A DNA stretch of 57,431 nt from Ministeria vibrans ATCC 50519 (Eukaryota > Protista > Filasterea): positions 1-57,431 of the forward strand of contig CALSCP010002583.1 of assembly GCA_943704425.1 (NCBI GenBank), read 5' to 3'. The notes below the pieces were generated by a model, which was given only the letters and a program-made list of their open reading frames with translations, was not told where the DNA came from and made no database searches. This document shows, piece by piece, positions 8,304 to 15,138 of the stretch. The position numbers and the translations under genes are program-made. Position 1 is the first letter of the stretch; every line of letters begins with the position of its first letter.

Positions 8304-8443
8304 AAAAAAAAAGGAAGGAAATGTTTAAAAACAAAAAAAAGAAGATTGTTTATATCAATACAAGTGAAAACACAAAGAAAAAGGAAAGAATAACTATTGA
8401 CAGAGACATGTTGCGATATAATCTTTTTTGGATCCGGTGTGTG

Positions 8444-11400
8444 TTACACGGCATCCACTCCCAAGTCGGTTTCAGCAAGAATCTTCTGCATCTCATCACT
8501 GAGAGGGGCAAGAGAGGGGTCGTCGATAAAATGGCGAGTGGCCGAGGTTTCGGGGAAGGAGGAGGAGTCGTGGCTGGGGGAGGAGGAGGAGTCGTGACTG
8601 GGAGAGTAGCGGTGGGAAGCAGTGGAGGAAGTGGTGGACTCGTCGGAAGGGTGAGGAGGGCTTGAGTTTGCGGTGTGTGACGACTGTCTTTGACTGTTGC
8701 TGGTGCTCACGGTATCATTAAGACTGTCAGGTGAGGCACCTGCAAGCGGTATGGGTGGCGCGGTAAAGTTCGAGAGTGCCTTGACGGCCGCACTGCCCGA
8801 GCCCAACTTGTTTGAGTAGGTCAGATGCATAGAGTCGGACACCATGTCGTCGCGGCAGGCGGGTGGCGCGGTCGGTGAGAGCATCGATTGTGTTGTAGCA
8901 CGGGACTGTGAAGTGCCTGTGGCAGTCGCCTTACTCACCGCCGCTGCTGTGCGTGGCATTCCTGTCGTAGACGCCCGACTTGCAGGGACCGCCACACTCG
9001 CCTCGGTGGTGTCATAACGCATCAGCAACGCACACATCTCACTGGAGTCCCCGCCCTGCCGCCGGGCCACACTCAACGGCGTCTCATGCATCATATTCCC
9101 ATGTGACGGCACTGCACCCGCCTCCAAAAGCACTTGCGCCACTTCAACATTCAGTTCACGCGCAGCCAAATACAGACTCGTATCCCCCTAAAAAAAAGCA
9201 ATTTTAATTATGAATAATATAATAACAATAAAAATGTAACAAACAAAATGTGTACCTTGAGAGTGGGTCTGTCAATGTTTGCGTTCTCACGCACAAGCAT
9301 ACGCACAATATCAGTGGCCCCCACTGCACTGGCCCAATGCAACGCACTCCATCCACTCGCATCCACACTCCACACAAACGCACCAGCTGAAAAAAGATGC
9401 ACACAATCAATTGCGCTTTTTTGGTTTCCCTCTTTGTCTTTCACGCACCTGTCAAAAGTCGACTCACAACATCCGTCATGGCATATTTACACGCACACAT
9501 CAAAGCTATACAATGAAACGTTAAATTTTTCTTCGTTCTTTTTATTTTTCGTTTCTTACCTGTTCTTCCGACGGTATCGCGAACATTGAGAAGCTCACGG
9601 ACATTGTGAGTGTGATCAAGGCAGTAGAAGACGCAGTCGGTGGCGGCGACGGAGCAGGCGGCATGAACACAGCTGAGCTGGTCAGCGTCGACAAGATACA
9701 GGTCGGCGCCGGCCGCAGTTAGGAGCTGGAGGGCTGGGAGGGAGCCCATGAGACACGCAATGAGTGCTGGTGTTTGCTTGTTCGCATTGACATGGTTCAC
9801 TTGTGCGCCGTGTGCAATGAGTTCGACAAGGCATTCCGTGGCGTTTGCCTCAATGGCCACGTAGAGCGCCGTGTTGCCGGCCGCATCGCTCTCGTTGATG
9901 GCCGCAGCAGGACTCTGCACTGTCCCCACTGATGTACTTGACGACATGGCAATCGACAAAATCGCATTGGCAACTTCGTCGCTGGACGAGAGCTGCGCAA
10001 CAGATGCCCCACTGTGGAGAAGTTCTTCGAGACTGGACGCCGTAATGGAATGTTGTTGTTGTTGTTGTTGTTGTTGCCGTTGTTGCTGTTGTTGCTGTTG
10101 TTGTTGTTGCTGTTGTTGTACGTTGTCGTATTGTTGCTGTGCCGCGCTGATGAGTGATGTGAGCGACACTACGTCGTTGCGCATACAGGCAGTGCGAATG
10201 TCGATAGCAAGCGACGAGAGACCCACCAAAGGTGTCACCGAGTCCATCTCCATAACGTAGGTAGTGGAAGTCTCGCGACGCTTGATATCGTGCAGCTTCA
10301 TCGACTCGACACGACTGCGTTTGCTCCGCCTGCCCCCTGCTCCTCCTCCTCTTCCTCTTCCTCCTCCAAGTGCATTCGTGGCACCACTTGCGGTGGTGCT
10401 CTGGCCATCGTTCTCTTCCTCTTCATCGTCGCTGTCGCCCTTGCGCGTACGTTTGCGACGACGCGCGACCACAGCAGCCAATACCACGACGAGGGCGAGC
10501 ATCAGAACTACAATGACGGCAATGGCAACAATGGTGCTTGTGGACAGACTCGACGACGGACTCGCTCCAGTAGGCATGAGAGGCACGTTGGATGACTGAA
10601 CGCCAGCGGCGACCAGACCCACCTCGGCGTTGCCCAGCAGCTCCATGGGATTCACGAGCGCCGATGAAGACAGGTAGTTGGCACACAGCGTGGGATTGGT
10701 GTTGGCCCAAGGGCTGTTGGCGCGCGGTTGATACGAAACACGCGCTCGCCATGCCGAGACGTTGCGCGACGCCATCGCTTCGGTCCACCTGGTGGACATA
10801 CCGCTCACGGCAACGCTCGTCTGCATCGATGCGTTGTACCACGCAAACAGATCGTACACGTCAATGGACATGACTGACACCTGCGAGACGAGCAGACTCG
10901 TCAGGCGGTACTGCAGCGTAGACATCGTCTCGTTCATGTTAAATGTCGTCATGTCCGTTGGTAAAAAGTACACCTCGAGAACGCCAATGTAGCTTGCGAG
11001 CGGGATGTCATCACAATCGCCACCGTCAAAACCGCAGGCAACGTTGTTGCACTGAAGATCGCAGGTGTTGTCGCCCACATGAGTGAGGCAATACGACTCG
11101 GAAGGACACACCGGAATCTCGCGGAGATACTCAAAAGGACCGGGGCAGGAGAAGCCGTTGAAGCTGCACTCAGCCACATTACAGGCAAGCTCAGACGCTG
11201 CTGTGCAATTTCCCGCGTCAAACGCCTGGCGGCACATGTCGCGCTGCGGGCAGCTCGCCCAGTAGTCATTGGCTTCGATACAGTCCAACCCGTCCCAATT
11301 GCACGCGGCGGTGTTGCACTACAAGGGGAAACGACGGCGCGTGAGAACCCACGGGAGTGCGCCGTCTCCTTTTGGCGACCCACAGCCACTGCTGCGACTC

Positions 11401-11883
11401 CCCTGCACCCCGTGCGACCCCAGCACACACTGCTCCAGCCACTCAAGTCGGGCCACCACAAACCCCCTTCCCCCCCCTTCACATAACACAGTTGCACAGT
11501 CGGCAAAAGTTGCACAAACATCCAAAAAAAAAAAAAAAAAAAAAAAAGGACGAGCCCTTAACATACCATATTGTCGCACGTTCCATCGCCAAACATCATC
11601 CAGCAGGACTGAACGCTGCATGATGAGTCGTATTCAAGCGCCGTTTGAGAGCGGGCTGGCCGTCTGACAGAGCAGAAGAAGAAAAGAAGAAAAAAAGGGT
11701 TCAGAGAAGGGTGTTCGGATGAGAGGACAGGTCGGAGACTTCGGGAGGTCGGTCACGACACAATGGGCAGGTTTTGGGGGGGGGAGAGAGAGAATGGAAG
11801 TCGGAGAGAGTCGGAAAGAGCGAAAAAGACAAAGCTTACGACAAAGTCCAAACCAGAAGCCCCAGCACTGCCAAGCGCATCAT
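8444..11883 (-). CDS. Notch-like receptor without EGF repeats: SP-3xLNR-HD-TM-ANK-PEST (6 exons: 11883-11840, 11663-11567, 11318-9560, 9505-9449, 9386-9256, 9187-8444; 943 aa)
   Basis: Signal peptide MMRLAVLGLLVWTLS; LNRs (FGDGTCDNMCNTAACNWDGLDC; CNVAECSFNGFSC; GDNTCDLQCNNVACGFDGGDC); TM followed by RRRKR; ankyrins including GWSALHWASAV and TSLYLAARE; S/P-rich tail. Confidence 0.88.
10050..10118 (-). repeat. Coding (CAA/CAG)n polyglutamine tract in the Notch-like intracellular domain
   Basis: Direct read of the sequence. Confidence 0.9.
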
Positions 11884-12191
11884 TGTGGTAGCGGGGGAGA
11901 GGGGGTGGAAGCACTGATGATTGATGAAAATGCAACAATGTCCAGTGAGAAGAGATTATTTTGTATTTTTGTATTTTTGTAATTCAGTGTTATTTCAGTC
12001 ACTCTTCTGTCAAATTAAAAATCCGTGAAAAAATCCTTCGCGACATATGTAAACAAAGCACTCTATCATTTAGTTCACATCAACTAGTAATCATCAATAG
12101 ACAATAAGATCATTCGCTGGTTGGTTTTGGATGACAAACACATCGATCTTTCTTACTCTGAACAATGTATGTGAATGTGTTTACAACATTT

Positions 12192-13346
12192 CTATTGATC
12201 CAATTCCAAAATAGTGTTGGCCCACTGAAACTCACTAGCAAAGCCGACGGAATCCCTGAGATTGAGCACGCCATGGCCCCACAGGTCGGGGACAAACATC
12301 ACATCGCCACTCTGCTGCACACACTCATATGAGGCACGTCGGCGCGGCAGTCGCGCGCGGTCCCCCTTTGCCCACACACTCACGGGCTGTTGCGAGTAGA
12401 ATGCGTCGAGAGGCGCAAAGAGAAACCATCGCTTTCGGCCATACACAAGTGCATTCCAGGCACTACAACAAACACAAAGAAAAACATGAAATTGATAATA
12501 TTATTAAAAAAAATCAATTGTTTGTGTGTGTGTATGTGCGTAAGTCAGTCGTCACCTTGAGTGCCAGTGGATGGGAGAGCCGGAGCGAGGAGGCCCAAGG
12601 AAGAACTGAATGTTGCTGCGTGTGATGTTGGTGTCGAGGGGATCGAGAAAATCAGGTAGGAAATCCGCAAAGACGTCGGTTGCAAGGGAGGCATTTGCAG
12701 GGAGAGACTCAAAGACATAGTGGGGCACCGAGGCGGAGGAAGGTTCGCTGGAGCGCATGTAGTCAATGAAGGAGCGCAAAGAGGAGCGCTGAGCAGAGCG
12801 GTGAGGGGACGACGGAAAGGACTGTGCGTAGGGGATGGACACGCGGGAGACGGGCGTGTCTGCGTGCATTAGCAGCAGTGCATCTCGTGTCAGTTTGCGT
12901 TGCCATGACGATGACTGGGCTCCCTTGCGCACCAGTACCGGACGCGAGACGCTCAAATAGTCCCTCACAAAATCTGAATGAACCAGTTTTTAGTTCTATT
13001 AATTTGGTAAGAGTGTATACCTTTGGCAGTGAAGGAGTCCGCACTGACCACATCAATGTCACACTCATTGCGTCGAAGGTCCGCAGCAATGCTCTCATCA
13101 TCAACACCATCAACCCAACCAGAGACAGTACTCTTCTCAGACTCTGTTTCAGTTTCAGTCGACTGTGCGACGGATTCTAATGTTCTCTGTGTAAGACTGG
13201 GGCATTCGTGAGCGCCTTCGAGTCCAAAGGGCTCTGCGACAGCCTGTGCAGCCCACTCGCCCGCCGCACACGCACTCTCCCACGCTGTACGACCCCACTC
13301 GTCCACCACATCCTCATCTGCACGCCCATCCAGCAGTGTCTATCGT

Positions 13347-13408
<62 letters not shown>

Positions 13409-15138
13409 GTGAGTGAGAGAGACACACAGACACAGACACAGACACAGACAGAGACACAGACACAGACACAGACACAGACACAGACAGAGACAAAGACAGA
13501 GAGAGACAGAGAGGACAGAGAGAGAGGAGGGGGAAAGAAAAAAAGTGATAAAGAGAGAGAGAGAGAAACAAAGTGATAGAGAGAAATTGTGCTGTTTGCG
13601 TGAGTGTGTGAGGACTAACCTGCACTGCCAGTGACTGTCCCCTGATGGCCGCACAATGCAGTGGTGTCTGTCCAAAGTGATTCTGTATGTCCAATCCTCC
13701 CTCACCATCACCTATTACATCTTCCATTAGTGTGCAGTATGTGTGTGTCTGTGAGCGTGTACGGTCAATGAGTCTGGCGAGCAGGGTGGGATCGCCCAGT
13801 GCGGCAAACACGTGCAAGACCGAGTGATTGTACACATTGGCGACTGAGACTTGTGCTCCTTCGCTAATAAGCTTTGAGACTGTCTTTTGTTGCGTCAGAC
13901 ACCCCAAGAACATTCCTTCAGCGTCCTAAAATTGAAAATATACCAATGAAAACTTCGAGTAAGGGTATTTCTTACCACTCTGCTGATAAAGGAGGATTCT
14001 CCTGCTGTATAGAAATGGGACACTTTGACATGACAGTTCAATCGCAACAGCGTGTGAAAGTCGTCCGCACCGGCACGCAAGAACACCGAGCGCAACAAAT
14101 TGATCATTGTCGCCTCAAAGCCAAATGACGCACTCAACAGCGAAATGTGACGCATATACGACGCAATGGAATCAGACTTGCTCCGCTCACGCGCCTCCTT
14201 CTCCTCTTCCTCTTCCTCTGCGTCGTTCTCGTCGTCCCGTTCATACAACTGCCGCGCAAGCGAGTGCATTCCGTGCACAAACGACTCGGTCAGCTGTCCC
14301 ACTCCAGCGGCAAACTGCCCAAACTCACTGTGCAGTGCGCCGTCGCTCGGCTGCAGTGCCAGCAGAAGCTCATAGCCCCGATACGCTTCATTATACACCT
14401 ACCAAAATGAAAGCACAAGAAAAAACCCCCCATAAAACAATTTCGTGAGCAACATCAATCGCTGTTTTCTCTGCTGTGTGTTTTTACCTGCTGTGCAAGT
14501 TTGATGTTGACAAAGAGTCGCACAAGCGAGGCCGCCTCCTCGCCGTGTTCCTTGGCAAATGCAACGCCCTTTTCGCGATTCTCGCCCAAGACACGGTGGT
14601 GCAGATGCTTGTGTAGATCAAACCAGTCGGAGAAGCCCGCGGCGCGAATGTAGAGCGAGAGAATGGACAGCGCGCGATCGTGTTCGCCGGCGCCCATCAA
14701 CAGCGCACTTGTTCGTCCGCAATACGACGCGTCGGCCGGCCGCAGCTGCACCGCCTTCTCCAGCATGTCAAGGGTCTCGGTCTGCTTCCCTTGCATCGAC
14801 AGAACCACGCCGGTATTCCAGTGTGCGTCCGCATGTGTCGGTTCAATCGCAATGCACTATCAGTGTGAGAGTGTGTGTGTCATTTGATAAGCAAGTTCAA
14901 ACCCCAAAAAAACACCACGTACGCTTGCCAACGATTCCAGGGCCTTTTCCAGGTTCTTTTCATGCACGGCCACCTGGGCGACGGCAATAAGCTCGTCGCA
15001 CAGCCCTGACAAAGACACACAATCAATACTAATGGAGCCCCTTTTCCTTCCACGTCTACCTTCCGCCTTGACCTCGTCAAGCTCAAGCGACGCCACCGAT
15101 CGACTCAATATACAAATTAGAACAGCCGCCAGCAGCAT
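12192..15138 (-). CDS. Signal peptide + TPR + ankyrin + C-terminal JmjC (JMJD8-like cupin) multi-exon protein
   Basis: MLLAAVLICILSRSVAS; TPR (IEPTHADAHWNTGVVL...LEKAVQLRP); ANK (GQTPLHCAAIRG); JmjC QFFLGPPRSGSPIHWH...YGRKRWFLF...QQSGDVMFVPDLWGHGVLNL. Confidence 0.82.
13347..13530. repeat. (GA)n and (GACACA)n intronic microsatellites
   Basis: Direct read of the sequence. Confidence 0.9.

Follow-up and report, generated by a model that had tools for sequence, protein, structure and literature searches.

An EGF-less Notch-like gene of Ministeria vibrans with a predicted negative regulatory region as its ectodomain

Introduction

How the Notch receptor was assembled is an old question, and surveys of choanoflagellates and filastereans list sets of Notch-like domains among which Pfam sees no HD (PMC6040629). 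A gene on the minus strand at positions 8444–11883 of contig CALSCP010002583.1 from the filasterean Ministeria vibrans ATCC 50519 (assembly GCA_943704425.1) raises this question in a compact form. The whole contig stretch of 57,431 nucleotides is hereafter called the window. A preliminary description, made from the letters alone, took the gene for a "proto-Notch" that lacks EGF repeats and has a complete negative regulatory region (NRR). Is the encoded ectodomain really of the Notch type, and what would that say about the origin of the proteolytic switch? We find that the locus is an expressed, complete gene. It probably belongs to a pre-metazoan Notch-like family, in which LNR repeats, an HD, a transmembrane (TM) helix and ankyrin (ANK) repeats follow one another, and its ectodomain is probably of the NRR type. 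Genes of this kind are already known, because Notch-like LNR-TM-ANK genes have been published for Monosiga, Capsaspora and Ministeria. What is added here is a transcript-verified complete gene, an ectodomain that consists of the NRR only, and evidence for the HD at the levels of fold and profile.

Gene structure and expression

The gene consists of six exons, read directly from the sequence, and its extent in the preliminary description was exact. The predicted product is a type I membrane protein of approximately 943 amino acids. Exon 1 (11840–11883) carries the start codon and the hydrophobic signal peptide, and exon 2 (11567–11663) completes the leader and adds the N-terminal half of LNR1, with the first Cys at 11620. 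Exon 3 (9560–11318), assigned from its translation, Pfam matches and the splice joint at its 3′ end, holds the second half of LNR1, LNR2, LNR3, the HD-like domain, the TM helix, the juxtamembrane region, a polyglutamine (polyQ) tract and the first ankyrin repeats. Exon 4 (9449–9505) encodes a portion of one ankyrin repeat, exon 5 (9256–9386) the ankyrin repeat bearing the ALHWA motif (Pfam Ank, E 1.7e-7), and exon 6 (8444–9187) the last two ankyrin repeats and the tail, ending with the stop codon at 8444–8446. The 5′ untranslated region was followed to the limit of the RNA contigs (11884–11943); the X2 contig that contains the 11663/11840 joint runs approximately 104 nt past 11840.

All five introns have GT..AG borders, and every intron is spliced out in RNA contigs, which derive from three RNA-type runs (X1, X2 and X5) of two studies. 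The joints 9186/9255, 9386/9449 and 9505/9560 are present in the contigs of all three runs. The 11318/11567 junction is formed by consecutive pieces of record 2 of X1, and the 11663/11840 joint is found in X2. The run X18, which is a DNA run, contains none of the five splice joints and is colinear with the genome. An artefact of the gene model was considered, and is ruled out by the spliced joints in the RNA contigs. One RNA contig of X1 reads from exon 2 into intron 1 (11664–11771) unspliced, whereas X2 is spliced at this place, which points to intron retention or pre-mRNA.

Three observations limit the gene on its 5′ side. An in-frame stop codon lies 26 codons 5′ of the ATG, the spliced X2 contig ends approximately 60 nt upstream of the ATG, and the upstream gene on the same strand, which encodes a TPR-ankyrin-JmjC protein, has its own poly(A) site at 12149 (a T-run loose end in X2), approximately 265 nt from the ATG. 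Therefore, upstream EGF exons are very unlikely, in agreement with the preliminary description; the RNA contigs cannot prove where transcription starts.

Domain architecture

Profile searches were performed exon by exon; exons 1 and 2 were joined to read the N-terminus. The order of elements is a signal peptide, three LNRs, a juxtamembrane segment of approximately 150 residues, one TM helix, a basic run, polyQ, approximately seven to eight ankyrin repeats and a Ser/Thr/Pro-rich tail. The EGF-less architecture proposed earlier is thus borne out, with its introns confirmed by RNA and its LNR and Ank modules recognized by Pfam. The N-terminus has a hydrophobic leader of 15 residues, and residue 30 is the first LNR cysteine; LNR1 does begin directly after the signal peptide, about 30 residues in, as had been stated. 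No EGF family of Pfam matched any exon.

The Pfam LNR family (PF00066) matched three stretches in exon 3 (E 4.5e-16) as well as the 32 residues of exon 2, which form the first half of LNR1 (E 0.0011), and all 18 LNR cysteines are present. The second half of LNR1 (11280–11318) has the canonical calcium-site residues and aligns with the Notch1 NRR chain 3eto. LNR3 (11013–11108; residues 70–103) is also canonical and is the top-scoring LNR stretch. LNR2 (11145–11252) is atypical, with a C3–C4 spacing of 7 residues and NGFS in the place of the DGxD calcium ligands; its pLDDT in the structural model described below is 86–91. The linker between LNR-A and LNR-B has the length found in Notch and keeps the conserved Trp. 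The HD-like (SEA-like) domain (10569–11012; exon-3 residues 103–250), delimited by its predicted topology, structural alignment, hidden Markov model (HMM) and hhalign matches, contains three N-glycosylation sequons and one Cys. A GSVVV-type autoproteolysis motif is not visible in the protein.

The TM helix (10464–10532; exon-3 residues 263–285) has a hydropathy of 3.54 and lies within a model helix of residues 258–292. It is followed by a basic stop-transfer run, RRRKRTRK (10440–10463), and by a basic motif resembling a nuclear localization signal (NLS), RRSKRSR (10311–10331), whose counterpart in a paralogue of the same genome is RFRKRSR. The polyQ tract (10053–10118; 22 residues including one Arg) is located within the first, degenerate ankyrin repeat. 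The RAM motif for CSL (WxP, i.e. hydrophobic-W-hydrophobic-P) is absent, and the intracellular part of exon 3 has no Trp at all. The C-terminal tail with the stop codon (8444–9001), recognized by its composition and covered by RNA contigs, contains 41 Ser, 20 Thr and 17 Pro, which together make up 78 of its 185 residues.

Ankyrin families of Pfam were matched by exons 3, 5 and 6. The repeats of exon 3 (9561–10043; residues 426–586) match Ank_4, Ank_2 and Ank, and the last two repeats (9002–9187), which comprise the LAARE motif and a capping repeat in the first 62 residues of exon 6, match Ank at E 0.0011. On a Notch ANK profile of 263 positions, the exon pieces fall in order, at positions 47–193 (exon 3), 152–194 (exon 5) and 201–257 (exon 6). 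Long generic ankyrin arrays of the same genome outscore this protein on the profile, and the PDB ranking obtained with exons 5 and 6 is led by designed (consensus) and long ankyrin arrays. These two comparisons do not discriminate between a Notch-type and a generic ankyrin domain. The two motifs that had been likened by eye to the last repeats of Notch do lie in the right repeats of the profile, on which, however, the generic arrays score higher.

Predicted structure of the ectodomain

The structure of exon-3 residues 1–300 was predicted by AlphaFold2 with a 40-row alignment; this model (model 1) therefore does not include the half of LNR1 encoded by exon 2. It has a pLDDT of 78.5 and a pTM of 0.69. 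The strands of the model comprise residues 112–120, 146–156, 188–197 and 233–240, and its helices residues 128–143, 157–167, 176–185 and 209–222. After the LNRs, a strand-helix-strand unit is followed further on by another strand-helix-strand unit, which is a SEA-like order, and then by the TM helix.

In a Foldseek search, the first 11 matches were all crystal structures of Notch1, Notch2 or Notch3 NRRs (E 1e-9 to 3e-7; 244–265 columns), and the next fold had an E value of 0.11. Alignment to the Notch NRRs with VIA gave Z scores of 15.5–17.1 and rmsd values of 3.2–3.6 Å for 192–205 residues, covering model residues 1–246. A wide search independent of Foldseek returned the Notch2 NRR with a Z score of 15.7, followed by the SEA domain of Gpr126 (9.1) and other SEA and MAD12 domains. 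We also prepared a control model from six rows only, all negative for NOD and NODP. It has the same topology as model 1, and Notch NRRs occupy its top eight matches with Z scores of 8.0–10.0, compared with 7.6 for the next fold. From model 1 and these searches, the juxtamembrane segment is predicted to adopt the alpha/beta fold of a Notch HD/SEA-like domain that packs on the LNRs. The lack of a predicted SEA/HD fold, which the preliminary description had named as a ground for giving up its reading, is thus not what the structural comparison yields.

Sequence relationship of the juxtamembrane segment to the Notch HD

At the sequence level, the NRR chains of Notch1, Notch2 and Notch3 are the only non-ankyrin matches in the PDB (E 1e-13 to 6e-10), and these matches span the LNRs and approximately 20 residues past them. 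An exhaustive phmmer search revealed no near relative, the closest match having 29% identity, and its best full-span matches (query 1–290) are Notch proteins with EGF, LNR, NOD, NODP and Ank domains, including Caenorhabditis LIN-12. Between the last LNR and the TM helix lie 154 residues, compared with 121–184 residues in most measured matches of the Notch family.

An HD profile was built from 34 Notch rows, to which neither this protein nor five other NOD/NODP-negative sequences contributed. On this profile, the protein of the gene studied here reaches 11.1 bits (E 1.5e-5 for one comparison), and none of 500 shuffled sequences scores as high. The paralogue scores 17.1 bits with both halves aligned. 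In profile-profile comparisons with the Notch HD by hhalign, for which the HD was extracted by columns (an earlier, crude extraction had given a P value of 0.26), the paralogue alone reaches a P value of 1.9e-5. When this protein, the paralogue and the EGF-less relative P0003 are combined, the probability is 95.5% with a P value of 1.5e-8 over 128 columns. Reversed controls gave P values of 0.15–0.75, with 0.54 for the reversed three-sequence set. A search of the ESM Atlas with the HD segment returned no usable match, and a word-prefiltered homologue search found nothing for the ectodomain and two uninformative matches for the paralogue; the prefilter fails at such divergence. From these results, homology to the Notch HD is sound for the gene family, of which this gene is the most diverged member.

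Paralogue, relatives and genome context

Only four loci with LNRs occur in the 29.7-Mb genome. The paralogue (G000:C2097, L008:3414–7319, minus strand) is a single exon of 1301 amino acids with a signal peptide, four to five LNRs, an HD-like segment of 160 residues, a TM helix, ankyrin repeats and a long tail, and has no EGF repeat. It shares with the gene of the window the EGF-less state, the same atypical middle LNR and the RxRKRSR motif. It differs in its single exon, in the number of its LNRs and in its HD, which is nearer to that of Notch by both measures given above. A third locus (G000:C985, L010:4461–6389, plus strand) is an open reading frame (ORF) with one LNR, seven to nine EGF repeats, a TM helix and a short tail, but no ankyrin repeats; in this genome, EGF and ANK are therefore found on different LNR genes. 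This ORF is preceded by a DUF6851 ORF, which is perhaps part of the same gene. The fourth locus (G000:C386, L009:4299–7379, plus strand) is a Stealth CR1/CR2 (GlcNAc-1-phosphotransferase-like) gene with two LNR modules, a known home of LNRs outside Notch. Among EGF-less relatives elsewhere, P0003 has six LNRs and is flanked on its compact contig by genes for ribosomal proteins. P0107 and P0143, each a single ORF, come from another sample set.

The genome contains presenilin, ten ADAM-like Reprolysin_2 matches and a CSL (LAG1-DNAbind) gene (G000:C607:10793–11329; E 2.3e-16), as well as three integrin beta genes and two T-box genes. Two DSL-domain matches (G000:C2494:19909–20043 and G000:C2427:35387–35521) score 30.6 and 28 bits, above the Pfam cut-off. 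The open frames that contain them are 7098 and 14922 amino acids long, and DSL-like modules thus coexist with EGF-less Notch-like receptors in this organism.

Assessment of the Notch-like reading

Several results weigh against the interpretation of the locus as a Notch-like gene with an NRR ectodomain. The HMMER comparison proposed in the preliminary description succeeded for LNR and Ank but not for the two HD families: NOD (PF06816) and NODP (PF07684) do not match the protein at E values up to 10, or anything in the whole genome at E values up to 1. These families were likewise unmatched in sponges and choanoflagellates (Richter 2018, PMC6040629). BLASTP of residues 103–262 against four related Notch proteins gave E values of 0.5 or worse, the HD-profile alignment of this protein covers the N-terminal half only, and hhalign with this protein alone gives a P value of 0.015. 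On the structural side, the alignment behind model 1 includes animal Notch sequences, and the control model has a low confidence (pLDDT 59). One row of the control, P0066, probably represents a canonical Notch, given the EGF-coding genes immediately upstream of it on the contig, so that the control is not fully independent. In LNR2, the C3–C4 loop is enlarged and three of the four calcium ligands are gone, as is also the case in the paralogue. The conserved HD cysteine column has Ala in this protein and the sole Cys of the domain is elsewhere, leaving no HD disulfide. In human Notch, a Leu of the LNR-A/B linker plugs the S2 pocket; the idea of an equivalent plug here was rejected, as the corresponding position aligns with Glu. 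No RxxR motif for furin (S1) occurs anywhere in the ectodomain, a site reported to be bilaterian-only (10.1101/2025.09.30.679519). There is no obvious handle for a pulling force, given that the protein has no ectodomain beyond the LNRs.

In the light of these results, the complete NRR of the preliminary description stands in part: the predicted fold matches Notch NRRs and the hhalign probability is high for the family, whereas NOD and NODP are silent and the segment alone is weak. The likeness to the N-terminal part of the HD seen by eye is real, as the shuffling test indicates, but weak in score. The motifs read as S2 and S3 sites are not supported as matches, since they carry no statistical signal (BLASTP E ≥0.5; the HMM match ends before the C-terminal half). 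The two stretches retain a positional equivalence only, to helix 209–222 plus strand 233–240 and to the Val-rich end of the TM helix, respectively, in the model and a MAFFT alignment.

Possible mechanism and alternative explanations

According to the model, the entire ectodomain would be a Notch-type NRR with nothing N-terminal of it. A calcium-stabilised LNR cap would shield the juxtamembrane strand from a sheddase, and could be loosened by loss of calcium, by pulling on the LNRs or by a partner. An ADAM-type protease might then shed the ectodomain, presenilin might cut the remaining TM stub, and the released intracellular domain, being basic and bearing polyQ and ankyrin repeats, might be able to enter the nucleus. 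We put forward these release steps, shedding followed by presenilin cleavage, as a tentative but quite conceivable proposal. Triggering by DSL ligands via EGF repeats does not apply, because the protein has none, and docking on CSL via a RAM motif is probably not used, because the motif is absent.

The ectodomain could instead belong to an uncleaved, membrane-anchored ankyrin scaffold or sensor, in which the LNR-SEA part is a short calcium-binding stalk, like the SEA-type domains of mucins, dystroglycan and adhesion GPCRs, and the ankyrin repeats act as a docking platform for partners at the membrane, with nothing going to the nucleus. This would be consistent with the fact that the HD region alone matches many SEA and ferredoxin-like domains (Z scores of 7–9), that the furin site, the RAM motif, the conserved plug Leu and the HD disulfide are all absent, that the ankyrin repeats have generic sequences, and that a ligand-binding part is missing from the ectodomain. 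We nevertheless consider a scaffold unlikely. Packing of LNRs on an HD is known only from Notch, and the model reproduces it over 192–205 residues; the NLS-like basic clusters are conserved with the paralogue; and the genome encodes presenilin, ADAM-like proteases and CSL. In addition, gamma-secretase usually acts on type I proteins whose ectodomain is a short stub.

A different doubt concerns not the function but the direction of change. The gene may be a secondarily reduced Notch, derived from an EGF-bearing ancestor whose repeats were lost in this lineage, in which case its EGF-less state would be uninformative about the origin of the switch. This is a possibility to be taken seriously, even if it is not the account that we prefer. 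The choanoflagellate Mylnosiga fluctuans has EGF, LNR, TM and Ank in the canonical order (PMC6040629), the Notch-like protein of Monosiga begins with an EGF-like region (PMC2770060, supplement 4), and the gene studied here has diverged further than the rest of its group. On the other hand, EGF-less relatives encoded by single ORFs recur (the paralogue, P0003, P0107 and P0143), and in the same genome the EGF repeats are found with a lone LNR on another, ankyrin-free gene, which fits the pattern of domains on separate genes described for Monosiga. The data accordingly do not separate the ancestral polarity implied by the word "proto" from EGF loss. Far less probable is an independent shuffling of LNR, SEA-like and ankyrin domains that would make the protein not homologous to animal Notch as a unit. 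All three modules do occur in other proteins, two further LNR genes exist in the genome, and Notch phylogenies in the literature that include sequences from outside animals lack resolution (PMC6040629). However, the three LNRs, HD, TM helix and ankyrin repeats are collinear with Notch at Notch-like spacing, the HD is homologous at the family level, the LNR-A/B linker equals that of Notch in length and in its conserved Trp, and the exon pieces are in order on the Notch ANK profile.

The reading of the locus as an expressed gene of a pre-metazoan Notch-like family can be extended to a more specific, speculative and rather improbable picture. A minimal Notch of NRR, TM helix and ankyrin repeats could act as a ligand-independent switch in a unicellular holozoan, opened by calcium, force or protease, and its presenilin-released ankyrin domain could have a nuclear role, possibly together with the CSL/RBPJ of the same genome, for example during aggregation. 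If this were true, the proteolytic switch would predate, and be separable from, ligand recognition by EGF and DSL modules. What the gene already shows is that an ectodomain can consist solely of an NRR-like module, and that the EGF-less form recurs, both in the paralogue and in no fewer than three relatives that come from two further samples. It also offers a small, clean construct with which LNR-gated shedding and gamma-secretase release could be probed outside animals, although by itself it proves neither these steps nor an EGF-less ancestry.

Other observations

At position 12820, within the upstream JmjC gene, every RNA contig of the runs X1, X2 and X5 has A, whereas both the genome and X18, the DNA run, have G. 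In the JmjC transcript, which is read from the minus strand, the change is one of C to U and may reflect RNA editing or a difference between strains; the organism label of X5 is the same as that of the DNA run. At 8332, in a 3′ region common to convergent genes, one additional A in a poly-A run is found in X2 and part of the DNA run, and is either a length polymorphism or assembly slippage. A GA-rich simple repeat at 13540–13590 has 100–1000 times the depth of its surroundings in every run, with many loose ends; it is a dispersed microsatellite-like element that breaks contigs.

Reads of this organism occur in marine samples. Its intronless cytosolic HSP70 gene (G000:C2175, L011:1306–3402, plus strand) encodes a product for which a 100% identical ENA protein exists, with animal and plant matches at 66–73%. 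The 90% cluster of this ENA protein includes a sequence from the transcriptome data set MMETSP0661 of the dinoflagellate Alexandrium margalefii, which is likely contaminated by this organism or a close relative.

Comparison with known systems

The protein has the features of pre-metazoan Notch-like proteins, namely a signal peptide, LNRs, one TM helix and C-terminal ankyrin repeats in this order, with a weak similarity to Notch. In Monosiga brevicollis, the Notch-like protein Monbr1:35907 has a signal peptide, EGF, two LNRs, a TM helix and three ANK repeats (Gazave 2009, PMC2770060). Its two LNRs are preceded by a Cys-rich/EGF-like N-terminal region of approximately 190 residues, in contrast to the protein described here, in which LNR1 comes directly after the signal peptide. 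Among other choanoflagellates, Mylnosiga has a Notch in canonical order, and neither NOD nor NODP was found in any choanoflagellate or sponge (Richter 2018, PMC6040629). A 2025 preprint describes NRR-like structures in choanoflagellate Notch-like genes.

Among filastereans, Notch-related transcripts without N-terminal domains were reported from Ministeria (Shalchian-Tabrizi 2008, PMC2346548), Capsaspora has Notch-like receptor architectures alongside CSL (Suga 2013, PMC3753549), and aggregates of M. vibrans are reported to upregulate all Notch-domain genes as well as a putative RBPJ (2026, PMC13366479). The gene of the window shares with these filasterean Notch-domain genes its receptor-type organization, its subset of the Notch domains and the presence of CSL/RBPJ in the same organism. 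The three integrin beta genes, two T-box genes and CSL of the genome fit a filasterean-like holozoan better than a choanoflagellate; integrin beta was found in one of 21 choanoflagellates, and T-box occurs in the filasterean Capsaspora (Richter 2018, PMC6040629). In their accessible sections, the filasterean papers give domain lists and not the HD fold or a complete EGF-less gene model.

The HD-like segment taken alone is predicted to have the same alpha/beta sandwich as SEA stalks, such as those of MUC16, Gpr126/ADGRG6, TMPRSS6 and IA-2 (Z scores of 6.6–9.1), but unlike this protein they have no LNR cap. In comparison with animal Notch (3ETO, 2OO4 and 4ZLP; LIN-12/GLP-1), this protein lacks EGF repeats, a NOD/NODP signal, the furin S1 site, the HD disulfide and the RAM WxP motif; it also misses three of the four calcium ligands of LNR2, and has one extra ankyrin repeat and a polyQ insert. 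Shared with animal Notch are the three LNRs, an HD of equal length, a single TM helix with a basic run, approximately seven ankyrin repeats and a Ser/Thr/Pro-rich tail, all in the same order, and the predicted ectodomain superposes on the solved NRRs with Z scores of 15.5–17.1.

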